Of a stretch of DNA of 64,000 nucleotides, positions 8,216 through 62,248 are shown piece by piece; positions within the stretch are counted from its first letter, which is position 1; each line of letters begins with the position of its first letter. Under the pieces are notes generated by a model, which saw only the letters and a list, made by a program, of their open reading frames with translations, was not told the DNA's origin and did no database searches. A program made the translations under genes and the position numbers. The stretch lies in sequence record NC_019406.1; one strand, given 5' to 3'.

Positions 8216-8302
8216 GCTACGGTGGACTGAGTGGTAAGGCGTGGGACTGCAAATCCCGCTGGCGAAAGCCTATCGTGGGTTCGATTCCCACTCGTAGCTC
8301 CA
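8216..8302 (+). tRNA. tRNA-Cys(GCA) with a long variable arm
   Basis: acceptor GCTACGG/TCGTAGC, anticodon loop CTGCAAA, T-arm GTGGG-TTCGATT-CCCAC, U73, encoded CCA; extra arm GGC-GAAA-GCC; 87 nt. Confidence 0.9.
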
Positions 8303-8320
8303 AAATTCCTGACATTTTTC

Positions 8321-8360
8321 TGCCAGCCTGCTTGACAAGCCGAAAAGCGTCCGGTACACA
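8321..8360 (+). promoter_or_regulatory. sigma70-type promoter for tmRNA
   Basis: TTGACA 8332-8337, 17-nt spacer, TACACA 8355-8360. Confidence 0.65.
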
Positions 8361-8366
8361 CCTCTC

Positions 8367-8712
8367 ATCGTCGTAATACGGCATACACGATTGGCGGCAA
8401 GACAGGGGTGCGATTCCCCTCGCCTCCACCAAGACCCCACCGGCCGGTGCTTCGGCGCCGCGATCTGCCCCAGCGACAGATCGAAATCTGAACGGTGCGG
8501 TGGGGTCCTGATGGGGGCGATCAGTTTCGATTGGCGCTGTGACTGGAAGACGCGACGTAGGGTGACCTCCTGGCTTAGGCTTCGGCCGAGGTAATTGGGT
8601 CAACGCTGACAAATGTCAACGACAACGACGCTCCCGTGATGGAGCAACTGCTGGCGGCCTAACGGCCTAAAGCGGCGCCCGGCGGGGGCGTGTCAACAGA
8701 ACCCCGCCACCC
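8367..8712 (+). ncRNA. ssrA: circularly permuted (two-piece) tmRNA
   Basis: acceptor piece ends GAC-AGGGG-TGCGATT-CCCCT-CGCCTCC-A-CCA (8431); hairpin intervening segment 8432-8512; coding piece starts GGGGGCG at 8513 and gives a G3:U70 Ala acceptor stem; tag ORF 8615-8662 VNDNDAPVMEQLLAA*; CAACAGAA near the 3' end. Confidence 0.92.
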
Positions 8713-8891
8713 TGCTTCCGCAGCCGGAGGCGACGACAACTAACGGCATGATCTGTCGGCAACCGATCAACCAGTTTTCGTCTCCGGCTTCGCAAGTAGG
8801 TTTGGGGAGTAGTCCTCCGAGGGATCGGAGTATAACGCTCTCCGGGGAGGCGCCTGGGACCATCCAGCCCAGACCGTCTCCCGAATTTTAT

Positions 8892-8954
8892 GCCGGGGAT
8901 AGGGTGGTCGCTCGCCCTAAACAGTTCGGGTAAGCTCCGACTGCCCCGGCTCCA
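8892..8954 (+). ncRNA. 63-nt tRNA-like RNA with a CCA end and only two internal arms
   Basis: perfect 7-bp GCCGGGG/CCCCGGC stem, then T and CCA; internal hairpins TAGGG/CCCTA and CAG-T-TCGG/CCGA-CTG. Confidence 0.55.
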
Positions 8955-8961
8955 AGTTTGA

Positions 8962-9038
8962 TGCGGGGTGGAGCAGTCCGGTAGCTCGTTTGGCTCATAA
9001 CCAAAAGGTCGAGGGTTCAAATCCCTCCCCCGCATCCA
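8962..9038 (+). tRNA. tRNA-Met(CAT) with an fMet-like D-arm
   Basis: TGCGGGG/CCCCGCA acceptor, D-arm GAGC/GCTC, anticodon loop CTCATAA, T-arm GAGGG-TTCAAAT-CCCTC, U73, CCA; lacks the three consecutive anticodon-stem G:C pairs and the C1:A72 mismatch of initiators. Confidence 0.9.
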
Positions 9039-9039
9039 C

Positions 9040-9530
9040 AAGCTGAAGCTCCGATGGCGGTCCTAGGCCGCAGCTTTACCCGGTCCCACGTCGGACAAGG
9101 CCGGGGTCTAGGTGGTGAGATATGATCGACGCCGGCGGAGCGCCAAGCCACCTTCCGCCACCAACGCCGTGTGCGTGACAAGCCTGGAGAGAACGGGCAC
9201 TCCAATCCGGGGTATGAGGCCGGATGTAGCGAACGCCAGCGAGATCGGCGTGACTGGTGGGGGAGAGGACCCACGCTGATTTCGATGAACGCATTCGGCG
9301 ATGTCGGCTTTCTCCATGGAGCCGCCGCCTGAGGCAGGAGCTACTGCCTCCGTCATGCGTTCTGCCAAATCAGCTTCGTCGCGGGGGTTCGATTCCCCAA
9401 GTTCGCGCCTCCTAGGGCGTAGGGCTGCATGGGACACCGACGGATAAACGGGAGTTGCCGGTTCGAGTCCGGCCTGGGCGGGGACTAGGAAACCCGGCCG
9501 GTGGAGGTAACTGGAGAACCTCGTCCGACC
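9040..9530 (+). ncRNA. highly structured non-coding region with two further module copies and two orphan T-arms
   Basis: modules at 9164-9198 and 9227-9274; T-arm hairpins at 9384-9398 and 9457-9473; GAACGCAT/ATGCGTTC multi-branch stem. Confidence 0.5.
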
Positions 9531-9536
9531 TATTTT

Positions 9537-9623
9537 GGTGTGGTGGCTCGACAGGTAAGGCGCCGGCCTCATAAGCCGGAGGGCGAAAGTCCTATGTAGG
9601 TTCGAATCCTACTCACACCTCCA
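9537..9623 (+). tRNA. tRNA with CAT anticodon (Met or Ile2) and a long variable arm
   Basis: GGTGTGG/TCACACC acceptor, CCGGC-CTCATAA-GCCGG anticodon arm, AGGGC-GAAA-GTCCT extra arm, GTAGG-TTCGAAT-CCTAC T-arm, U73, CCA; 87 nt. Confidence 0.88.
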
Positions 9624-12392: not shown

Positions 12393-13601
12393 CTACTGGA
12401 ACTCGGTGCCGCCCTTGCGGGTCAGGTACGCTTCCGAGACGTGCTTGAGGATCGGGCGCAGGCGCTTGCCCGAGTCGAGCGTACGCTTGCGCTGATCGCC
12501 GGCGGCCGTGACCACCACACCTTCGCGGATGTTGGGGCCTTCCTGCTGATCCATCTTGCGGCCGAGCGTAGTCGTGCCCGACGCCAGCTTGTCGATCACC
12601 GCGCGATCGAACGGCCCCTTGTAGAGGACGGGGACGCGGTCGACGCCCATGGCGGCAAAGAAGGCCATCTTGTCGGCGTCATCCAGGTAGGACGTGCCGT
12701 GATTGTCGGAGACCCCAACGTCGAACGCCGCGAACGCCTTGGTCGTGAGGCCGTAATGCAGGTCTTGCACGCCGGCGCCGTAGACTTCGCCCAGCAGGTG
12801 AACACGGCAGCCGGGGAAGCGGGTCTGAGCCACTTCCTGAAGCTTGTCCGCCAGAGGCGCCAGCACCTTGACGTACAGCGTCTTGTCCAGGTTCTTCTGG
12901 ACGTTGATGAAGGTCAGGCCATCGGCGCCCATGCCCTTCGTCGAGATCGCGACGCGGCCGTCGCCGAACAGTTCGGGATCGGGCGCGGCGTCATCGACGT
13001 GGCTGATACGGGCCAGAGTACCGTGCAGCTTTTCGGTTACCACGACTTCTTCGCCGTCCTCAAACAAGTCCGGGAACGCCTTGATGTTCTCGATGTCGTA
13101 GTCCAGGCGCGACTCAAAGACGCCCTTCATCAAGCCGTCCATGCTGGTCGGCACTTCGGGAACGTACTTGGTGATGCCGAAGAACGGGGCGACATCTTCG
13201 TACAGGCTGACCTTCTTTCGACTCGCAGGGAAGATGCCCGCGCCAGCGTCGCCGAAGCCGACGATGATGCGGCCATTGACGTCACTGGTCTTCCAGACAA
13301 GGCCCTGGCTCAGCACGCCACGCAGCGTGATCGCCTTGACGCGGTTTCCGCGCGCGCCGGCCAGGATACCGACGCCCTTATCGGCGTTCCAGTATCCGCG
13401 CTCTTTAAGGTGCTGATCTGGTACGACCGCGCCCTCAGGCACGTAGATGACGTACTCGCCCTTGACGTAGCGGTGAGAGCCGTCCGGGTTCTTATTGGCG
13501 ATCGCCTCGTAACCGCGAATGCGCAGGATCGAAAGGCGGTCGGCATTGGGGTGGTCGTAAACGTCGTCGACCAGCAGGATCGGGACTTCGAAAGTGCTCA
13601 T
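12393..13601 (-). CDS. RNA ligase (Rnl2/DRB0094-type) with N-terminal OB-like domain
   Basis: HPNADRL N-terminus, motif I TEKLHGT, GEVYG, FAAFDV, REGVVV, C-terminal LKHVSEAYL. Confidence 0.92.
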   Translation of the reverse strand: MSTFEVPILLVDDVYDHPNADRLSILRIRGYEAIANKNPDGSHRYVKGEYVIYVPEGAVVPDQHLKERGYWNADKGVGILAGARGNRVKAITLRGVLSQGLVWKTSDVNGRIIVGFGDAGAGIFPASRKKVSLYEDVAPFFGITKYVPEVPTSMDGLMKGVFESRLDYDIENIKAFPDLFEDGEEVVVTEKLHGTLARISHVDDAAPDPELFGDGRVAISTKGMGADGLTFINVQKNLDKTLYVKVLAPLADKLQEVAQTRFPGCRVHLLGEVYGAGVQDLHYGLTTKAFAAFDVGVSDNHGTSYLDDADKMAFFAAMGVDRVPVLYKGPFDRAVIDKLASGTTTLGRKMDQQEGPNIREGVVVTAAGDQRKRTLDSGKRLRPILKHVSEAYLTRKGGTEFQ

Positions 13602-14617: not shown

Positions 14618-14958
14618 CAGAAGTCGAGTCCCAGGTCTTTACGCTGCTCAGGCGTCAGCGCCGCCATAGCCGCGCTCTTGGCTTCAGCCTTTTGCCGACC
14701 ACGCTGCGCGATGAGGTCGATATTGAGGTCCGAAGCGGGGAACCCATCCTGGGCGCCCTCGGCAAGCAGATAGTATCGGTCACCGACCTTGATTGCGTAG
14801 CGTTCGCGGACTGTGCCCATACCGCCGAAGTAGCCTTTTCCGGTCGCGGCATAGTCGGCTTCGCCTGACGAAGCGAAGTAGCCGACAATGCCGCCGACAA
14901 CGCCACGATCATCGGTGGTCGTATAGGTGACGTACAGGCGGACGATCTTCGCTTCCAT
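14617..14958 (-). CDS. hypothetical protein
   Basis: 113-aa ORF in the operon. Confidence 0.65.
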   Translation of the reverse strand: MEAKIVRLYVTYTTTDDRGVVGGIVGYFASSGEADYAATGKGYFGGMGTVRERYAIKVGDRYYLLAEGAQDGFPASDLNIDLIAQRGRQKAEAKSAAMAALTPEQRKDLGLDF

Positions 14959-15815
14959 TAGCCGACTCCTAGGGCATCGAGCAGAAGCTGATTAGCCTCG
15001 CGCTCGAAGGCGGCATTCGGCGGCAGCCTGTCGAAGCCCTTCTCCTTCACCCAGCCGATCGACGACTCCACGAAGCTGTCGAGCGCCGGGATACGCGTGC
15101 CGTGACCGACTTCGCCCATGGTCGCCTTGCGGCCCAGGAGCTTCGCCACTTCGTCGCGAGCGGCATCGGGAATGATGTCATGCGACATAAGCTGCGGCAG
15201 CGTCATCGGCGGGACTTCGCCGTAGCGCTGAATCCAAGCGATCGCGCAGGCGCCCCGGATGGCGTAGAGGTACTTCTTGAGGTTGACCGTGGTGATGCCT
15301 TTGATCATCACGCCGTCGCGCTCATGCTGGGCGAGCACCTCAGCCGTCGGACGGTTGTTGATCTCGCCCTCGTAGCACTGCCGAGTCAGCCCGAAGTAGT
15401 GGCGGGCGCTGGCTTCCGGGCTGGAGTTACGCTTGATCAGGTCGCGAAGCTTGTAGGGCAGCGGACCATGCTCGCGATAGATCAGCGGACTGGACAGCCA
15501 TTCGGCGACCGTGGCGTTGCCCTTGACGAGCAGCCCCAGGGCCTTACGCAGGTCCCAGCCATTCAGGTCCCAGACACCTTCAATCGGACGCTCGATCACG
15601 TCGCGCGGCGTCGTCAGCCCCAGATATTGCGAGAGCGGGCGAACGTAGAAGAACCGGACGTCGTTGTCGCTATCCGGCGACGGGAAGCCCCAGGCGCGCG
15701 AGCCGCTCTCCACCGCGAACACGATGGTGACGTTGTCCTCGGCTTCGACCCGCCCGAGACGGTTGTTGGCCTCGCCATAGACATCCAGCGGCAGGGTAGG
15801 GGCAGTGAACGACAT
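14958..15815 (-). CDS. Pol-beta superfamily nucleotidyltransferase (RlaP/YcgL-like)
   Basis: ESGSRAWGFPSPDSDNDVRF, GWDLRKAL, EWLSSPLIY, KKYLY; SD GAGGAG before ATG 15815. Confidence 0.88.
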   Translation of the reverse strand: MSFTAPTLPLDVYGEANNRLGRVEAEDNVTIVFAVESGSRAWGFPSPDSDNDVRFFYVRPLSQYLGLTTPRDVIERPIEGVWDLNGWDLRKALGLLVKGNATVAEWLSSPLIYREHGPLPYKLRDLIKRNSSPEASARHYFGLTRQCYEGEINNRPTAEVLAQHERDGVMIKGITTVNLKKYLYAIRGACAIAWIQRYGEVPPMTLPQLMSHDIIPDAARDEVAKLLGRKATMGEVGHGTRIPALDSFVESSIGWVKEKGFDRLPPNAAFEREANQLLLDALGVG

Positions 15816-23017: not shown

Positions 23018-23680
23018 ATGGCTCAACGTTCCACTTCTCGCAAGCGCGCCAAGGTTCTCGACCGCGCGCAGTTCGACGCCCTTCTACCGATCGTGCGTGC
23101 GTCCAAGACGCCGCTGCGCGATGAAGTCGCCCTGCGTCTCTCGTTCAGCGCGGGGCTGCGCGCCTGCGAGATCGCCAACCTGCGCTGGTACAACAACCTT
23201 CTGGGTCCGACCGGCAAGCTGCTGGAGAACATCCACATTACCGGCGACGTCGCCAAACGCTCTATTGAGCGCGTGATCCCGATCGAGCCCGAACTGGCGA
23301 AGCTGCTGCGCCGCCTTCGCCGGCAGCGGCCGGAAGACGAATACGTTTTCTTCGCGGTCCACAACTACCAGACCCCTATGGTGCAGGACCCCAAGAACCC
23401 CAAGAAGAAGATCATCAACCCGACCTTCACCTTGGGCAAGGTCCAGCCGACAGCAGTGATCCAGTTCTTCCGCCGCCTGTATCGTCAGGCGGGCTACGTG
23501 GGCTGCTCCAGCCACAGCGGCCGGCGTACGTTCACCACGGTCAAGGCCCGTCAGGTCGGCAAACACGGCTGCTCGATCGAGGACGTCCGTGATCTGGTCG
23601 GCCATAAGCGCCTGGACACCACGGCCTCCTATATCGAGCCGTCGGACAACCGCCGCGCGCTGATCTCGGCGGACTGGTAA
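23018..23680 (+). CDS. tyrosine recombinase (catalytic domain only)
   Basis: GLRACEI, HSGRRTF, GHKRLDTTASY with the R-K-H-R-H-Y set intact; SD AAGGAGG. Confidence 0.92.
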   Translation: MAQRSTSRKRAKVLDRAQFDALLPIVRASKTPLRDEVALRLSFSAGLRACEIANLRWYNNLLGPTGKLLENIHITGDVAKRSIERVIPIEPELAKLLRRLRRQRPEDEYVFFAVHNYQTPMVQDPKNPKKKIINPTFTLGKVQPTAVIQFFRRLYRQAGYVGCSSHSGRRTFTTVKARQVGKHGCSIEDVRDLVGHKRLDTTASYIEPSDNRRALISADW

Positions 23681-42102: not shown

Positions 42103-43026
42103 TTAGGTAGCCAGAAGCGAAGGCGACTGGATCGTCTGGGCATAGCGTTCGATCGCGCCGGAGATGCGGTCACGAAGCTCCTGCGGTTCGAAACGCCGGG
42201 AGGGTCCGTGCATCTCCAGCAGGCGCATGGCGCCAGTGAGGAGACGCACCCGCATCGCCGCCGAGACGTAGATACCGACGTTGTCGTCGAAGTCGATGAT
42301 CTCGTCGAGGTACATCGGTCCCTGCGGCGAGTTGAATTCGATGCAAGCCTCGATGTTGGCGATGCGATCGGCGACCTTGACCGGCGCCGCCTTGGGCAGG
42401 TCTGCGATTTTCGCGTACTGCTGCTTATTGCGGGCCTTGCGGTTCTGCTTGACGCCGTCGATGTACATCTCGCCAGTGACGGCCCAGACCAAGTCTTCGA
42501 TCTCGTCACCATAGCGGGCGCGAACACGGACGCGGCGCGATACCATCGCTTCGTCTTCCCAGCAGTCCTCTTCCACGTCATGGAGCCAGCCCACGACGAG
42601 GTAGCGCCAGCCGGCATCGAAGTCGCGCAGCACTTGGACGACCTTGCCCAGGTGATAGCCGTGCCGCAACTTACGCGCCTCGTCGTACCATTGCTCACCG
42701 TGGTGCATGACGGCGAAACGGCGCGCGTCTTCGATGATGTGCGTACCGTCGGTGTGATACGTCTCCTGTTCGCCCGTATCCGGATCGATGAAGTACATCA
42801 TCGGCAGGCCGCTGAGACGAATCGGGTGATGCGTCTTGCCCGAGGCGATCGAGAACCAAACCTCGCCGGTACGTGCGACTTCAGCCGCCTCCTCGGGGGT
42901 CAGCTTCCAGCACGAGATGTTCTCGATACCGTTGCCGTGGACGTAGAGAGGCCGCACATGGTCCTCGGTGCCCGGCGCCGGATTGAGCACCTTGTTCCAG
43001 CCGCAGAAGTCGATGGGGTCCGCCAT
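42103..43026 (-). CDS. HD-domain (SpoT/Mesh1-like) hydrolase with an extra N-terminal domain
   Basis: FAVMHHGEQ, YHLGKV, WLHDVEED, VKVADRIAN. Confidence 0.85.
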   Translation of the reverse strand: MADPIDFCGWNKVLNPAPGTEDHVRPLYVHGNGIENISCWKLTPEEAAEVARTGEVWFSIASGKTHHPIRLSGLPMMYFIDPDTGEQETYHTDGTHIIEDARRFAVMHHGEQWYDEARKLRHGYHLGKVVQVLRDFDAGWRYLVVGWLHDVEEDCWEDEAMVSRRVRVRARYGDEIEDLVWAVTGEMYIDGVKQNRKARNKQQYAKIADLPKAAPVKVADRIANIEACIEFNSPQGPMYLDEIIDFDDNVGIYVSAAMRVRLLTGAMRLLEMHGPSRRFEPQELRDRISGAIERYAQTIQSPSLLAT

Positions 43027-43577
43027 CAGAGCGCCTTTCGCATCGCCAGCACCTCGTCCAGGTGCAAAGGCGTGAAGTTAGTCTGCTCGACACAGACGTT
43101 GATGTAGCGTGGGTCCGTCTTGTTCATCAGACGGGGCCAGCGCGGGTGGGGCACCTTCTTGGCGTGGAGATGCCCGTGAACATTCCACCCGAAGCGGTCG
43201 ACTTCCGACGTGTGGATCGGCACGTGCGTCAGAGCCAGTCGGTGTTCTGGCATCACTCGGATGCCGTAGACCTCCTTAAAATACTCCAGGTATTCCGTGG
43301 TCTTGAAGACGTCGTGGTTGCCCCGGATCAGGCGCTTACTGCCGTTGAGGCGGCCGACCAGATGCAGGTTGCGTTTCGTGATGACGATGTCGCCCAGCAG
43401 GTACGCCTTGTCCTGTGGCTTCACCAGGGCGTTCCAGCGGGAGATGATCGCTTCGTTCATCTCATCGGCGTTCGCAAACGGCCGCAGCGGCGTAACGCCG
43501 TCGGGCATCTTGAACTCGGTACAGGTCTTCTCGTGACCCAGATGCAGGTCGGACAGGAACCAGATGTCAGCCGGCAT
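43026..43577 (-). CDS. calcineurin-like phosphoesterase
   Basis: SDLHLGH, LGD, GNHD, THVP, HGHLH. Confidence 0.9.
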   Translation of the reverse strand: MPADIWFLSDLHLGHEKTCTEFKMPDGVTPLRPFANADEMNEAIISRWNALVKPQDKAYLLGDIVITKRNLHLVGRLNGSKRLIRGNHDVFKTTEYLEYFKEVYGIRVMPEHRLALTHVPIHTSEVDRFGWNVHGHLHAKKVPHPRWPRLMNKTDPRYINVCVEQTNFTPLHLDEVLAMRKAL

Positions 43578-44268: not shown

Positions 44269-45498
44269 CTAACCCTTGACGCACAACACCTGCTTGAGGG
44301 TGGCGACGATCTCCACCATTTCTTCCTGGGCCGCCATGACGAGTTCGATCGGCTTGTAAGCCTTCGGCGTCTCGTCGATCACGCCTTCGTCCTTGCGGCA
44401 CTCGACGCCCTTCGTGGCTTCGACGTGCTCGTCCAGGGAGACGAGCTTCTTCGCCGCCGAACGCGACATGACGCGGCCGGCGCCGTGGCTGCACGAGCAG
44501 AAGGCGTCAGCGTGGCCCTTGCCGCGCACGATGAACGACTTGGCGCCCATCGAACCCGGAATGATGCCGAGTTCGTCCTTCTGCGCCGACACCGCGCCCT
44601 TGCGGGTCACGAAGATGTCCTCGCCGAAGTGGCGTTCCTTGTTGACGTAGTTGTGGTGACAGTTCACCGCTTCCTTGTCGGTCTTGAACGCCGGCACGAA
44701 CTCCCGGATCGCCTTGAGCACGCGGACCATCATCATGTCGCGGTTCAGGCGCGCGAAGTCTTGCGCCCAGCCCACGGCTTCGATGTAGTCGTCGAAATCC
44801 TGCTCGCCCACTTCGAGCCACGCGAGGTTCTCGTCCTGCGGGCGCACATGGCGCTTTGCCAGGGCGTTCTTCGCCTTCTCGATGAAGTAGTTGCCGATCA
44901 CGTTGCCGACGCCGCGCGATCCCGAGTGCAGCATCACCCACACGTTCGGGTCCGTCGTCCCCTGATCGGTCTGGATGCAGATTTCGATGAAGTGGTTGCC
45001 GCCACCCAGCGACCCGAGTTGGGTCACGTTGTTCGACGTCTCCAAGATCGGATGCTTTTCGCACAGCTTCTTGAACCGCGCCTCCAGCCCAGAATCGATC
45101 CAGGCACGCATGATAGAGTTCGGGATGCCATGACGACCCGGTTCCTGCCACGAACCCTTCGCGCCCGGCCCGCCGTGCGGAACCGCACGTTCGATCGCCG
45201 AACGCATCGCCGCCAAGTTGTCCGGCAGTTGCGAAGCAGTCAGCGTGGTGCGCACAGCCATCATGCCGCAGCCGATGTCGACGCCGACCGCGTACGGGAT
45301 CACCGCATCCTTGGTCGGGATCACCGAACCAACGGCTGCGCCGTACCCGGCGTGGACGTCGGGCATCACCGCGACGTGCTTGAACACGAACGGCAGCCCG
45401 GCGACGTTGTGGGCCTGATCTTCGGCGCCGCGCTCGAAAGGCACACCGTCGACCCAAGCCTTGATTTGCCCGCCGTAGCGGCCGTCGATTTCGAGCAC
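44269..45498 (-). CDS. rtcB: RtcB RNA ligase
   Basis: MPDVHAG, GVDIGCGM, GGGNHFIE, HSGSRG, HHNY, RKGA, SHGAGR, YKPI. Confidence 0.97.
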   Translation of the reverse strand: MLEIDGRYGGQIKAWVDGVPFERGAEDQAHNVAGLPFVFKHVAVMPDVHAGYGAAVGSVIPTKDAVIPYAVGVDIGCGMMAVRTTLTASQLPDNLAAMRSAIERAVPHGGPGAKGSWQEPGRHGIPNSIMRAWIDSGLEARFKKLCEKHPILETSNNVTQLGSLGGGNHFIEICIQTDQGTTDPNVWVMLHSGSRGVGNVIGNYFIEKAKNALAKRHVRPQDENLAWLEVGEQDFDDYIEAVGWAQDFARLNRDMMMVRVLKAIREFVPAFKTDKEAVNCHHNYVNKERHFGEDIFVTRKGAVSAQKDELGIIPGSMGAKSFIVRGKGHADAFCSCSHGAGRVMSRSAAKKLVSLDEHVEATKGVECRKDEGVIDETPKAYKPIELVMAAQEEMVEIVATLKQVLCVKG

Positions 45499-46839: not shown

Positions 46840-47496
46840 TTACGAGACGGTGGTGCCGGCCGGGGCCAGCAGCTTCACGAAGTCCGCCAGCGACGCAGCG
46901 GCGGGCACGCCCAGCGCCTTGAAGCGGAATTCGCCGTCCTTCTTGTAGAACGTGCCGAACTGGAGAGCGGTGGCGCCGCCGGCGTCTTCTTCCAGGTCGT
47001 AGTTGGCGATGGCCAGGGCCTTGTAGTCGGCTTCGGTCATGCCCGGATTGGCGGCTTCGGCGGCGAGCAGAGCGGCTTCTTCGTAGACGCGCACGTAGGC
47101 GTTGCGGACCAGACCGAAGTTCTGGTTGCGGGCAGCGGCTTCGTGGATCGTCACGGCGACGATGATCTCGTCGACGGCCGGGTTCAGCAGGCTGGTGTCG
47201 ATGGTGATGCGCTCATCATCGCCAGCGCCGTCGCCGGTCAGGTTGTCGCCCGAGTGGACGATCGCGCCGTCGGCGGACTTCAGGTTGCCGTAGAACACGA
47301 AGCTTTGCGAGGCCGGCGACAGCAGCTTGGGATCACCGTTGGCGTCCTTGACGCACGGGAACGCCGAGGCGTCCAGGTCCGGCGGGTTCTGCGGGTTCGG
47401 GTTCCAGCCCAGGCCCACCACGAAGCGCGAGACGCCCGGCGCGGTCTTCGACAGGTTCACGTTCGAACCCTTGGTCAGATTGATGGTGTCGGTCAC
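46840..47496 (-). CDS. terD: TerD-family stress protein
   Basis: VGLGW, DLDASA, VFYGN, HSGDNLTGDGAGDDE, NFGLVRNAY, FRFKALG. Confidence 0.95.
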   Translation of the reverse strand: MTDTINLTKGSNVNLSKTAPGVSRFVVGLGWNPNPQNPPDLDASAFPCVKDANGDPKLLSPASQSFVFYGNLKSADGAIVHSGDNLTGDGAGDDERITIDTSLLNPAVDEIIVAVTIHEAAARNQNFGLVRNAYVRVYEEAALLAAEAANPGMTEADYKALAIANYDLEEDAGGATALQFGTFYKKDGEFRFKALGVPAAASLADFVKLLAPAGTTVS

Positions 47497-47572
47497 GACA
47501 TCCTCTCCTTTTCGTCAGATCAGGGCGAAGGTTGACCCGACGGCGTTCGCCCTTTCGCCGTCAGGTATAGTT

Positions 47573-48604
47573 TTACTCGCCCGCGACGGCTTGCTTCAAG
47601 GCGGCGCGGTTGGCGAGCAGCGAGGTGATGAAAGCCGCGCCGATGAAACCAGCGCCAGCGAGACCCTTGACGATCTCGGGCAGTTCGTAGATCGGACCGA
47701 TCAGCATCATGCCGGCGAGCGCCAGGATTGCCCAGAAGGCTCCCATCTCCAGGTGCGGGAACTCGGTCAGCGTGCCGCGATCAACCGCCAGCAGCGTCAG
47801 TTCCCGAACGGCCAGGGCGCCCACGCCGAGACCCACCATGATCCAGACGATGTTGCTCGTCAGTGCGAAGGCGCCGATGACGCCGTCAAACGAGAAGCTG
47901 GCGTCCAGGACTTCCAGGTAGATGAAGCCGCCGATGCCGGCGCGGATGACCTTGTCGGCGCCGCCGCCTGCGATCGTGCCGAGCGTCTTGGTGATCGAGA
48001 AGAGGACGATGCCGACGAGACCCGCCGTCAGGTAGCTGTAGCGGAGGGCTTCGGGAACGAACGGAGCGATCACGAGCAGGGCGATCACGGCGATGACGGC
48101 TTCAGCCATGGTCGCGAGGCCCAGCTTGTTGAACAGGGCTTCGATCGGGCCGAGCCAATGGCTTTCCTTTTCCTGGTTCAGGAAGTATTCCAGGCCGACC
48201 AGCAACAGGAACGTGCCGCCGAACGCCGCGACGATGTGATGCACGCCTTCCAGCGTGTGGCCGTATCGGTTCGGGTCTTGGAACGCCATCTCCAGCACGG
48301 CCGCCGGCGACATGTGCGCCGCGAAGGCGACGATCAGGATCGGGAAGATGAAGCGCATGCCGAACACGGCGATGATGATGCCGACGCCCAGGAAGAGCTT
48401 CTTCCACTTCTCGTCCCAATTCTGAAGAACGTGGGCGTTGACGACGGCGTTGTCGAACGACAGCGAGATTTCCAGGATCGCCAGAAAGCCGACCGTGTAG
48501 GCCAGCGTCAGGCCGCCCATGAAGCCGGCGACGCCGACCGCGAGAACGAAAGCGATCAGCGGGACCGCGAAGTAGCTCCAGATGGAGCGGTGTTGGGTGG
48601 GCAC
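47573..48604 (-). CDS. TerC-like integral membrane protein (DUF475)
   Basis: LEISLSFDNAVVNA, YLEVLDASFSFDGVIGAFA. Confidence 0.92.
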   Translation of the reverse strand: MPTQHRSIWSYFAVPLIAFVLAVGVAGFMGGLTLAYTVGFLAILEISLSFDNAVVNAHVLQNWDEKWKKLFLGVGIIIAVFGMRFIFPILIVAFAAHMSPAAVLEMAFQDPNRYGHTLEGVHHIVAAFGGTFLLLVGLEYFLNQEKESHWLGPIEALFNKLGLATMAEAVIAVIALLVIAPFVPEALRYSYLTAGLVGIVLFSITKTLGTIAGGGADKVIRAGIGGFIYLEVLDASFSFDGVIGAFALTSNIVWIMVGLGVGALAVRELTLLAVDRGTLTEFPHLEMGAFWAILALAGMMLIGPIYELPEIVKGLAGAGFIGAAFITSLLANRAALKQAVAGE

Positions 48605-48666
48605 GAAGGTGAACTCCTATGCTTGAGGGCTGGAAGGGCGTCGGCTCGACCGACGCCCCAGCGGGA

Positions 48667-49371
48667 TCAGGCGGCGCCGTGCTTCTTCAGGAAGGCCAGG
48701 AACTCTTCCGTGGCGAGCGCGTCGTACATCTGCTCGTCGGTCATCTCGATCGAGCGCATGTGGATGAAGCCGCAGTTGTCGTAGTCGTCGGCCAGCTTCT
48801 TCAGGCCCTGGAAGGTCGCGCCGGTGCCGATACCGATCAGGTGGAAGTAGACGGGCTTGCCCGTCTTCTCGGCCTCGCCCAGCAGCTTGCCGGTCTCGTT
48901 CACGTCACGGTCGCTGGTGTCGCCGTCCGTGAAGAACAGCACCAGGGCGGGGTCCTTGGCCGAGGTGGCAGCCTTGGAGAAGATGTTGGCGAACGCGCCG
49001 GCCTTCGGGAAAAGCTTGGCGAGGTTCGCGGCCACAGTCGGAGCGTATTGGGTGCCACCGCCGACGAGACGCCGAACGTGGTTGCCGATGTAGGAGCCGA
49101 AATCCGAGGCGGTGGCGCCCGGCAGTTCATGCGGACGTTCGTCGAACGCGACCACTTCGATCTCGCCGTTGTCGTCGAAGGTCAGCGCGTAGCCGATCAG
49201 GCGCTTGAACACTTCTTCGACGACGCCGCGCGAATAGAGGCCGTTCATGGAGCCGGAGACGTCGAGGTCCGCGAGGACGCGCATCGTCGGCAGCTTAGTG
49301 AGGCCCTTCTTGGCGAGCGAGATGGTAACCTTCTCGGCCTTCTCTTTGGCCAGATTGATAACGTCGGACAT
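48667..49371 (-). CDS. vWA-domain protein (TerF/TerY-associated type)
   Basis: MIDAS DVSGSM, GGGT, FFTDG. Confidence 0.88.
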   Translation of the reverse strand: MSDVINLAKEKAEKVTISLAKKGLTKLPTMRVLADLDVSGSMNGLYSRGVVEEVFKRLIGYALTFDDNGEIEVVAFDERPHELPGATASDFGSYIGNHVRRLVGGGTQYAPTVAANLAKLFPKAGAFANIFSKAATSAKDPALVLFFTDGDTSDRDVNETGKLLGEAEKTGKPVYFHLIGIGTGATFQGLKKLADDYDNCGFIHMRSIEMTDEQMYDALATEEFLAFLKKHGAA

Positions 49372-49407
49372 GGGTTCTCCCCTGGAAATGTTGATGTGAG
49401 GGTACGC

Positions 49408-50496
49408 TTACGCGGTCGCCGCCAGCTTGGCCGCGAGATCGCGGCTCATCTGTTCGACCAGAGGACGCTGCGTGGTGACGCGAGTGACCATGTCCTCTTG
49501 AATCTTCTTGGAGGCGTCCAGGGTGCGGAACAGTTCGTCGCGGACGATCTGGAGCGTCTGGATGTCGACCGAACCACGCGCCATCTGCTCCCGGATCAGG
49601 ACGGTGCCGGTGCCGAGTTGCTTGGCGTTCGCCTGGATGATCGCGTTGTTCATGTCCTTGACCTTCTTCGCGAACTCGGCGGTCTGGACCTGCTCCATAT
49701 TGATGATGTACTTCGCGAAGGCCATCTGGAGTTGCGGCAGCGTGGTCTCGCGGACCTCGCCCAGCGTCATCACGAGCATGGCGCCGTTCTGCTTGGCCGT
49801 GTCGAGTTCGACAGCCGACATCTCGCCCAGCAGAAGGCCGTCACGCAGGTCGCCGACGCGCTTCTTGGCGAAGGCGATCGTGGTGGTCCACGCATTGAGG
49901 CGCTGGGCCGCCAGGGCGTCGCCATCCGCCACCGTCGGCATGTTGGCCTCCATCCAGGCGATCCGGCGCTCGCCCTCGGCGATCTTGGCCTTGGTGGCTT
50001 CGTAGCGCTGGTTGTTCTCGACCGCCAGCGCGTCGATGTCCTTCTGGCGTTGCGTCATGCGCACCGCGTGCTTGTCGACGTCGGCGGCCAGGGTGTTGAC
50101 CTGCTTGTCGACCGAGGAGAAGTGCGATTCGAGTTGACGCTTCGATCGCTTCAGGAACCCGAAGATGCCGCCCTTGAACTTGCCGGGATCGTACTGCTGG
50201 GCGCCGATCACCAGAGCGTTCAGGGATTTCCCCATCTCACCCAGGTCGTTGGCGAGCATTGACTGGTTGATCTTCGAGACGATGTTGGTCTGAGCCATGG
50301 CTTCGGTGCGGCCGAAATCCATGACGCTGGTCATGTCGAAGGCTTGTTCGGGAGCCAGCGATGGCGTCAGCGCGGGCGCTCCGTAGTTAGCGCCCATCGC
50401 CATCGGTTGGACCTGCGGCGCGGCCGGGGCTGGGGAAATGGGAGCGGTCGGCGTCGCGACCGGCTTGCCCAGGTTGAGACCACGCGGTTCGGTCAT
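49408..50496 (-). CDS. telA: TelA/KlaA toxic anion resistance protein
   Basis: long coiled coil; LESHFSSVDKQV, ETTLPQL; located in the ter cluster. Confidence 0.75.
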   Translation of the reverse strand: MTEPRGLNLGKPVATPTAPISPAPAAPQVQPMAMGANYGAPALTPSLAPEQAFDMTSVMDFGRTEAMAQTNIVSKINQSMLANDLGEMGKSLNALVIGAQQYDPGKFKGGIFGFLKRSKRQLESHFSSVDKQVNTLAADVDKHAVRMTQRQKDIDALAVENNQRYEATKAKIAEGERRIAWMEANMPTVADGDALAAQRLNAWTTTIAFAKKRVGDLRDGLLLGEMSAVELDTAKQNGAMLVMTLGEVRETTLPQLQMAFAKYIINMEQVQTAEFAKKVKDMNNAIIQANAKQLGTGTVLIREQMARGSVDIQTLQIVRDELFRTLDASKKIQEDMVTRVTTQRPLVEQMSRDLAAKLAATA

Positions 50497-61402: not shown

Positions 61403-62248
61403 TTGAACCGCAAGGTCTACATCCGCGCCGCCCTCGCGGTGGCGCTGCTGGCTTCGGCCGCCGCTATGCCGGCCCAAGCCGCTTCCAAGAAGAAGCCGAT
61501 CGCCACGAACCTCGGCAGCACGCCGACGGTCAACGCCGATCCGCTGGCCGCAGGCTTTGCCTGCACGAGCCAACTCACGGCCCAGGCTGCGCATCCGCTG
61601 CGTATCGCCGTCGGCAAGGTCGGTGACTTCACCGGCAAATTCTCGAACGAAGCCTCCGAAGGCGGCTTCCGCGTGACGCAGGGCGGCGCCCTGATGATCT
61701 CCAGCGCCCTGGGCAAGCTGGCCAACGTCGACCAAGTCGAGCGTCTGGACACGCAGGTCGCCGACATCGACACGCTGCTGGCGAAGTCTCAACTGCTTCG
61801 CGACGGTGACGCCCTGCGCGGCCTGACCGCCGGCCAGTATGACGGCTCCGACTACTACATCATCGGCGGCATCACCGAGGTGAACTACAACATCCGCTCG
61901 GGCGGCGGCAAGGTCGGCGTCTCGAACATCTACGGCGGCAAGCGTACGTACACGATGAACGTCGCGGCCGATCTGAAGATCGTCGAAACCAAGTCGCTGA
62001 AGGTCGTCAAGACCATCAGCGTCCAGAAGCAAATCACGGGCTACGAGAACACGTTCGGCCTGTTCACCTTCAAGGGCGACTACCTCTTCGACCTGGACTT
62101 CGGGTCGAAGGGGCAGGAGCCGCTCCAACTCGGGGTTCGCTCCGTCCTGGAGTACGGTACCCTGGAACTCGTCTCGGCGGTGGCTCCGAATCGTGACTAC
62201 TATGTCGCGACGTGCCGCCCCTACGCCGAGGCGATGTTCGGGAAGTAA
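61403..62248 (+). CDS. hfaB: CsgG/HfaB-family secretion channel
   Basis: IAVGKVGDFTGK, VTQGGALM, VERLD, GSDYYIIGGITEVNYNIRSGG, QEPLQLGVR. Confidence 0.88.
   Translation: MNRKVYIRAALAVALLASAAAMPAQAASKKKPIATNLGSTPTVNADPLAAGFACTSQLTAQAAHPLRIAVGKVGDFTGKFSNEASEGGFRVTQGGALMISSALGKLANVDQVERLDTQVADIDTLLAKSQLLRDGDALRGLTAGQYDGSDYYIIGGITEVNYNIRSGGGKVGVSNIYGGKRTYTMNVAADLKIVETKSLKVVKTISVQKQITGYENTFGLFTFKGDYLFDLDFGSKGQEPLQLGVRSVLEYGTLELVSAVAPNRDYYVATCRPYAEAMFGK

Follow-up and report, generated by a model that had tools for sequence, protein, structure and literature searches.

What is encoded in the unannotated gap of a small RNA-gene island in the genome of the Caulobacter jumbo phage CcrColossus is the question raised by this locus. 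The window analyzed here is a stretch of 64,000 nucleotides (64 kb) of sequence record NC_019406.1, and a 1.5-kb query around the gene in question is 100% identical to the 279,967-bp genome of CcrColossus (JX100810/NC_019406). All coordinates are window positions, which are obtained by subtracting 124,000 from the positions of the record. The RefSeq record places a tRNA-Cys at 8216-8302, a tRNA-Met at 8962-9038 and a second tRNA-Met at 9537-9623, all on the plus strand, while 8303-8961 is without any annotated feature. An original prediction, made from the sequence alone, put into this gap a phage-encoded, circularly permuted (two-piece) transfer-messenger RNA (tmRNA) with its own degradation tag. 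Our analysis bears this out: positions 8367-8711 of the plus strand encode a complete circularly permuted tmRNA with its own tag frame, and this identity is supported by two covariance models, ARAGORN at relaxed thresholds, thermodynamic folding and covariation across relatives. Together with the tRNA genes, the tmRNA gene forms a small plus-strand RNA-gene island, which is bordered by protein genes that are without exception encoded on the minus strand.

When the whole window was scanned against 4227 Rfam families, tmRNA_permuted (RF04321) matched at 8369-8662 with 83.8 bits (E=1.5e-14; gathering score 47) over the full length of the model (1-213). The alphaproteobacterial model with which the original prediction proposed to check the locus, alpha_tmRNA (RF01849), matched at 8328-8711 with 53.5 bits, which is above its gathering score of 50. 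ARAGORN, the other program proposed, gave a divided answer: at default thresholds it called no tmRNA in the window, and with the option -ps (95% thresholds) it called one permuted tmRNA at 8339-8753, which is the same gene with the same tag, VNDNDAPVMEQLLAA. At -ps80 ARAGORN made three extra calls, two of which overlap the real gene; these were dismissed as implausible false positives. The parts of the gene follow each other in the circularly permuted order, the T-arm, 3′ acceptor strand and CCA preceding the 5′ acceptor strand and the tag, with an intervening segment in between.

The acceptor piece (8367-8431; plus strand, like all parts of the gene), whose 5′ end is inferred, is supported by the Rfam alignment, the minimum free energy (MFE) fold, the cofold and the covariation. 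It contains the P2 5′ strands (8369-8374, 8393-8396 and 8398-8400), which enter long-range helices, a T-arm at 8404-8420 (AGGGG at 8404-8408 and CCCCT at 8416-8420 around the loop TGCGATT), the 3′ acceptor strand CGCCTCC (8421-8427), the discriminator A8428 and the encoded CCA (8429-8431). The intervening segment (8432-8512; 81 nt) consists of an outer stem of 10-14 bp around two hairpins; its closing stem pairs GACCCCACCG (8433-8442) with CGGTGGGGTC (8498-8507), and by itself the segment folds at -41.4 kcal/mol. The coding piece (8513-8711) has an uncertain 3′ end, taken as the end of the RF01849 alignment at 8711, and starts with the 5′ acceptor strand GGGGGCG (8513-8519), which forms 7 of 7 pairs with the 3′ strand, G8515:U8425 being the G3:U70 pair of the acceptor stem. 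The CCA end at 8431, the 81-nt intervening hairpin, the GGGGGCG 5′ end and the G3:U70 pair are exactly where the original prediction had located them. Next in the coding piece are the D-loop analogue ATCAGTTTCGA (8520-8530), the P2 3′ strands (8531-8557) and, upstream of the tag, the pseudoknot PK1 (8560-8602) with S1 (GGG 8560-8562/TCC 8568-8570), S2 (TGACC 8563-8567/GGTCA 8598-8602) and a hairpin inserted in the loop. PK1 aligns with the PK1 region of the host ssrA, and an alternative hairpin within it (ACCUC:GAGGU) is possible in CcrColossus and CcrPW at positions that are gapped in the other genera.

The predicted tag frame (8615-8662; GTC...GCC TAA) runs from the resume codon GUC (Val) through 15 codons to the stop codon UAA. 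It translates to VNDNDAPVMEQLLAA with the C-terminus Leu-Ala-Ala, as had been claimed and as ARAGORN -ps also reports. Helix 5, as read from the sequence, is a GGCC/GGCC hairpin at 8656-8667 with the stop codon in its loop, which is retained in CcrPW and found in a different register in the other genera. It is followed by the 3′ pseudoknot (8675-8708) with S1 (8675-8678/8688-8691), S2 (GGCGGGG 8681-8687/CCCCGCC 8702-8708) and a loop that holds the conserved CAACAGAA. In the unconstrained MFE fold of 8367-8560, the T-arm and the long-range P2 helices are recovered, together with an acceptor stem that closes over the intervening hairpin. When the two pieces presumed to be the mature ones are cofolded (-111 kcal/mol), the acceptor and P2 strands pair between the molecules as expected.

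Homologues were found by BLAST in 38 records, all of Caulobacter phages. A BLAST match in Brevundimonas phage Bambus covers the T-arm of a tRNA only, at a locus without a tmRNA. At the syntenic position, which lies upstream of tRNA-fMet, RF04321 matches with 70-90 bits in all four Caulobacter genera of the Dolichocephalovirinae, for which we compared CcrPW (Colossusvirus), phiCbK and Magneto (Shapirovirus), BL10 and Rogue (Poindextervirus) and RB23 and BL47 (Bertelyvirus) as representatives; the record of RBC8 names no genus, and its copy is near-identical to those of Poindextervirus. No tmRNA feature is annotated in the GenBank/RefSeq records of CcrPW, Magneto, BL10, RBC8, Rogue, RB23, BL47 and phiCbK. 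The CcrPW copy is 88% identical to that of CcrColossus, and the two tags differ by one residue. The tags are VNDNDAPVMEQRLAA in CcrPW, VAANDNDVVAFASAREAIAA in phiCbK, VADNDNDVVAFASAREAIAA in Magneto, VASNDNDVVAYASAREAIAA in BL10, VAANDNAPFAVREAIAA in both RBC8 and Rogue and VNASNDNDVVVSTMTSVKLAA in both RB23 and BL47. The frame is open in all of these relatives, with Val first, NDN, an L/I-Ala-Ala end and one or two stop codons, and the GUC resume codon in the context AAAU|GUC is invariant in the copies examined across the four genera. The Val resume codon pointed out in the original prediction is therefore present in CcrColossus and is not peculiar to it.

Covariation was analyzed in 11 distinct sequences, comprising isolates and the IMG/VR contigs L128, L156 and L097. 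For the helices proposed in CcrColossus, the canonical pair cells number 421 of 469 (90%), and compensatory change on both sides is seen in 20 of 44 pairs, while in the control, with the 3′ partner slid by 1-3 columns, 44-49% of the cells are canonical and 6-8 pairs are compensatory. The acceptor stem is canonical in 77 of 77 cells with one compensatory pair, and G3:U70, the A73 discriminator (A8428) and CCA are invariant across the aligned sequences. The T-stem (55/55 canonical, two compensatory pairs) and P2a (33/33, with all three pairs compensatory) are equally regular, P2b and P2d being canonical in 34 of 43 and 51 of 66 cells, respectively. For the pseudoknots, the canonical cells amount to 26/30 in PK1-S1, 47/50 in PK1-S2 (two compensatory pairs), 35/38 in S1 of the 3′ pseudoknot and 63/77 in its S2, where six of seven pairs are compensatory.

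The host gene offers a second comparison. A coding pattern that matches the host tag, NDNFAEEFAVAA-stop, is present in 55 genomes of the Caulobacter lineage, and the C. crescentus tag quoted in the original prediction agrees with this pattern and with the string printed in Caulobacter papers. Host ssrA and the phage gene share the order of acceptor piece, intervening segment and coding piece, G3:U70, A73 and CCA, the T-loop UGCGAUU, the D-loop analogue GAUCAG..UCGA, PK1, the 3′ pseudoknot with its CAACAGAA loop, the NDN of the tag and the AA-stop end; compensatory changes of the 3′ pseudoknot relative to the host are visible in the host-phage alignment. In other respects they differ greatly. 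RF01849 scores host ssrA at 234-246 bits and the CcrColossus gene at 53.5, the longest exact run common to the phage gene and C. vibrioides ssrA is 13 nt, and identity falls from 72-79% in the tRNA-like domain to 32-48% in P2/PK1 and the tag. The intervening segment is 28-33 nt long in 54 host genomes, by direct motif measurement (lengths derived from ARAGORN are unreliable), and 81 nt in CcrColossus, and a hairpin found 3′ of the tag in the host is absent from the phage. The resume contexts align as AAAU|GCG AAC GAU AAC in the host and AAAU|GUC AAC GAC AAC in the phage, so that the resume codon is Ala (GCG) in the former and Val (GUC) in the latter, and the encoded tags are ANDNFAEEFAVAA and VNDNDAPVMEQLLAA, respectively. 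These comparisons indicate that the phage tmRNA gene is old, diverged and under selection, rather than a recent host capture or an attachment-site fragment. An attP-type ssrA fragment of a temperate phage was considered and rejected, as the gene is complete and shares an exact run of at most 13 nt with host ssrA.

Comparison of the upstream regions of relatives recovered a promoter-like pattern, CTTGACA-N15/16-G(C/G)TAnAn. In CcrColossus, its conserved -35-like element CTTGACA lies at 8331-8337 and its -10-like element GGTACAC at 8353-8359 (both on the plus strand), the latter some 7 nt upstream of where the transcript is inferred to start. G(C/G)TAnAn is shared across genera and resembles the Caulobacter sigma-73 -10 consensus. 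CTTGACA is found at an equal distance upstream in CcrColossus, CcrPW, Magneto, phiCbK, BL10, RBC8, Rogue and the IMG/VR contig L128, and also upstream of the gene in Bertelyvirus (RB23) and in BL9. The distance of the promoter-like element from the first helix is fixed in the Colossus-, Shapiro- and Poindexter-type copies, and the spacers between the -35-like and -10-like elements are divergent in sequence. A promoter scan of the locus with the E. coli consensus found none. From the position of the promoter-like element, the transcript would start at about 8362-8368, in agreement with the start given in the original prediction.

We consider it highly probable that a functional, phage-encoded two-piece tmRNA gene that is run on host factors best explains this locus. 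As the original prediction noted, the window contains no smpB gene (the best tblastn match of E. coli SmpB has an E value of 0.76), and no SmpB of Caulobacter phages was found among the 68 phage records matched by E. coli SmpB in tblastn; therefore, the phage tmRNA must work with the SmpB of the host. We propose that the conserved promoter-like element belonging to the gene may serve host RNA polymerase, with transcription beginning at about 8367. As folding and covariation support, the 81-nt hairpin would then set the CCA-bearing 3′ strand (to 8431) beside GGGGGCG at 8513. By analogy with host ssrA, host RNase P would cleave at G8513 and 3′ trimming to the encoded CCA would free the intervening segment, leaving an acceptor piece and a coding piece that would stay joined through the acceptor stem and the P2 helices. 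Established tmRNA biology predicts that host alanyl-tRNA synthetase (AlaRS) would charge the RNA via G3:U70 and A73, and that host SmpB and EF-Tu would carry it to ribosomes stalled on broken mRNAs. Translation may resume at GUC 8615 and add (A)VNDNDAPVMEQLLAA, whose C-terminal Leu-Ala-Ala should direct the tagged product to ClpXP. The likely benefit for the phage is that ribosome rescue would be sustained during infection where the host tmRNA is limited or cell-cycle regulated. The original prediction also suggested that a phage copy could resist RNA-targeting defences of the host, which is a reasonable possibility, as are its suggestions of altered SspB dependence and of bridging the cell-cycle dip in host tmRNA.

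Several points weigh against this proposal. The RF01849 match exceeds its gathering score of 50 only marginally (53.5), ARAGORN at default thresholds misses the gene, and the proposed middle P2c helices are unsupported, being canonical in only 9 of 36 and 27 of 36 cells. A scan for intrinsic terminators found none at the locus, nor was a defined 3′ end found past the pseudoknot (8708-8711). The resume position at GUC 8615 is assigned by homology with the host only, and an alternative reading of AAAUGUC|AAC, in which GUC is the triplet that precedes the resume codon, as in E. coli, would give (A)NDNDAPVMEQLLAA. Host SmpB is itself cell-cycle regulated, which weakens the rationale of a phage copy that bridges gaps in host supply. 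For this and related phage tmRNAs, the searchable literature offers no data on expression, processing, charging or tagging.

The first alternative concerns the purpose of the gene. The phage tmRNA could be a takeover version of host ssrA, in which Val and a retuned tag alter the handover to SspB/ClpXP and the dedicated promoter frees rescue from cell-cycle control, perhaps with help from the elaborate intervening RNA. We regard this as unlikely; if true, a full burst size in swarmer cells or early stalked cells would require the phage gene. A narrower proposal, to which we give somewhat less credence, is that the gene is a real tmRNA in which only the tag is retuned, Val and the divergent middle altering the handling by SspB-alpha or the protease and hence the kinetics or route of degradation, possibly for faster amino-acid recycling or for escape from adaptor competition. 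The invariance of Val (GUC) in the examined Dolichocephalovirinae copies against Ala (GCG) in the host agrees with this proposal, as do tags of 15-21 residues against the 13 encoded in the host and tag middles that vary from one genus to another with NDN and the terminal AA preserved. Of 98 viral permuted tmRNAs sampled, moreover, ARAGORN gives Val as the first residue in only 10, against none of 45 host calls; the Val call for the IMG/VR contig L097 is probably wrong because homology puts its resume codon at GCU. Against a retuned tag, NDN and the hydrophobic-Ala-Ala end are retained, which predicts ordinary degradation by ClpXP, and neutral drift would equally yield a divergent middle. NDN and the hydrophobic-Ala-Ala end are tag parts that are generally held to be important for SspB and ClpX. 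A literature search on the tag determinants of Caulobacter SspB gave general statements only, such as the roles of tag parts for SspB and ClpX described in PMC8138137.

The phage RNA could also be a competitor or decoy that absorbs host SmpB, EF-Tu, AlaRS or stalled ribosomes and thereby blunts host trans-translation. There are precedents: a tmRNA-like RNA of mycobacteriophage DS6A that lacks a coding sequence is reported to inhibit the endogenous tmRNA in E. coli (PMC11915505), and a counter-tagging role has been proposed for Lacusarx (PMC5648845). Without a phage SmpB, moreover, the phage RNA must compete for that of the host. A decoy, however, needs no tag frame, PK1 or 3′ pseudoknot, all three of which are conserved with compensatory changes, and the frame is open with an AA-stop end in every genus. 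These features make a decoy distinctly improbable.

The intervening segment is more elaborate than a spacer requires, which raises the thought that the excised segment is itself a selected small structured RNA and the tmRNA just part of the output of the locus. It is 81-105 nt long in most phage copies, against 28-33 nt in the 54 host genomes. Its Colossus-type hairpins are unalignable across genera and were analyzed group by group; in CcrColossus, CcrPW, RB23, BL9 and the IMG/VR contig L156 it has a multi-helix fold with compensatory change on both sides in 9 of the 14 pairs of the outer stem, the unpaired CAGCGA (8472-8477) and ATCTGAAC (8486-8493) are invariant, and the stems around these motifs covary. 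Shapirovirus and Poindextervirus possess a different, equally conserved four-way junction. However, viral permuted tmRNAs usually have long segments (those of the 98 sampled IMG/VR sequences that also gave the Val-first figure span about 20-242 nt, with a median of 82 nt), the segment of contig L128, a member of the clade, is only 51 nt, the structure has no Rfam match, and a stable stem that joins the acceptor strands suffices to explain the covariation, so that we think it very improbable that the segment was the object of selection. Equally hard to credit is a non-functional, decaying relic, i.e., a host ssrA copy or attachment-site fragment from a once-temperate ancestor: phages that integrate into ssrA often carry its fragments (PMC9004378), a putative tyrosine recombinase is encoded in the window and the RF01849 score is far under that of host ssrA, but the gene is complete and shares no exact run above 13 nt with host ssrA, and four genera have kept it at one locus, where 20 pairs are compensatory, the identity elements do not vary, the frame is intact and the promoter is conserved. 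The putative recombinase, gp182 (23018-23680, plus strand, 220 aa), lies between predicted terminators in a phage that is usually treated as virulent.

Other genes in the window also concern RNA. RNA-repair genes, all on the minus strand, are found in 12393-13601, 14958-15815, 42103-43577 and 44269-45498; minus-strand genes encode an RNA ligase (gp167), an RlaP-family nucleotidyltransferase (gp172, 224 bits) and RtcB (gp216, 416 bits), as well as an HD phosphohydrolase and a metallophosphoesterase (gp212 and gp213). With RNA-repair genes, tRNAs and a tmRNA, the phage evidently invests in maintaining translation RNAs. Within the RNA-gene island, the tRNA-Cys(GCA) at 8216-8302 and the second tRNA-Met(CAT) at 9537-9623 (both plus strand) are each 87 nt long and look like paralogues. 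Both have a class-II-like long variable arm (a GAAA-loop hairpin), which is unusual in Cys or Met tRNAs, a long D-loop and a U73 discriminator, and their counterparts are annotated at 85-89 nt in CcrPW, BL10, Rogue, RBC8 and Magneto. The stretch 9240-9545 (plus strand) contains two further T-arm-like motifs, GGGGGTTCGATTCCCC near 9384 and GCCGGTTCGAGTCCGGC near 9458, in stretches that fold strongly (-85.8 and -43.9 kcal/mol), and Rfam gives a weak YrlA (Y RNA-like) match at 9433-9545 (23 bits, E=0.07). They probably correspond to the Y RNA-like RNAs that PMC12135203 cites as reported for CcrColossus. The hypothetical gene gp163 (9108-9317, minus strand), which has no Pfam match, overlaps this region and may be a spurious open reading frame. 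Farther away, gp219-gp222 (46840-50496, minus strand) are TerD-like, membrane, vWA(TerF-type) and TelA-like genes that form a tellurite-resistance-like stress module within the phage, and gp242 (61403-62248, plus strand) encodes a CsgG-like curli assembly protein and adjoins a putative lipoprotein gene. Marine myophages with two-piece tmRNAs are likewise reported to have curli pore genes (PMC9004378), a co-occurrence that may be a coincidence.

Phage tmRNAs have been counted before. A census lists 402 phages with a tmRNA, of which 53 are two-piece by ARAGORN, and its Table S1 contains "Permuted" calls for CcrSC, CcrBL9, CcrPW, CcrSwift, CcrKarma, CcrMagneto and phiCbK, with no entry for CcrColossus (PMC9004378); a 2025 tmRNA database holds 79 phage sequences (PMC11915505). 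Nor does the CcrColossus genome paper mention a tmRNA (PMC3556154). The gene is missing from that paper, from the census table and from the GenBank/RefSeq annotation because ARAGORN at its default thresholds narrowly misses it. Of nine phage copies tested, default ARAGORN misses four (CcrColossus, BL10, RBC8 and Rogue), and phage tmRNA counts based on ARAGORN are therefore underestimates; covariance models such as RF04321 are preferable for this purpose. A pattern scan of IMG/VR returned at least 120 contigs, and about 100 of 120 sampled carry complete permuted tmRNAs, with tags mostly of the form ANDN...ALAA.

The immediate practical value of our results is an annotation correction for CcrColossus and related records. 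The searchable literature contains no experimental study of a permuted tmRNA in any Caulobacter phage. For learning what phage tmRNAs do, Caulobacter with its phiCbK-like phages may offer the best setting. Trans-translation in Caulobacter is well characterized and non-essential, with known cell-cycle regulation, the SspB adaptor and ClpXP. The phage gene suits such work in being conserved, in having its own promoter-like element and in encoding a predicted tag that is distinguishable from that of the host by mass spectrometry.

Set beside known systems, the CcrColossus tmRNA is a previously unannotated member of a catalogued class, and no new mechanism or type of system is involved. The original prediction described the permuted tmRNA as the alphaproteobacterial form; it is indeed found there, but not exclusively, as betaproteobacterial and cyanobacterial lineages also have it (PMC11915505, PMC9004378). 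Closest are the other tmRNAs of the Caulobacter Dolichocephalovirinae (CcrPW, phiCbK, CcrMagneto, CcrKarma, CcrSwift, CcrSC and CcrBL9), which agree with CcrColossus in locus, promoter-like element and architecture as well as in the GUC resume codon, the NDN core and the L/I-A-A end of the tag; what varies from genus to genus is the tag middle and the way in which the intervening segment folds. The two-piece tmRNAs of marine pelagimyophages and the methylophage Melnitz (PMC9004378) and those from IMG/VR are, like that of CcrColossus, alphaproteobacterial-type, phage-encoded and permuted, with a long intervening segment and no reported phage SmpB. They mostly have an Ala resume codon and an ALAA end, unlike CcrColossus with its Val, and Melnitz-type genes carry a glutamine riboswitch in the 3′ domain (PMC9004378), whereas Rfam finds none in the CcrColossus gene. 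The one-piece phage tmRNAs (mycobacteriophage Bxz1-type) and the DS6A form are likewise phage-borne and found beside large tRNA sets in big genomes. Unlike the CcrColossus gene, neither is permuted, and the DS6A form, which inhibits the host tmRNA, is without a tag frame (PMC11915505), whereas CcrColossus keeps a conserved one.

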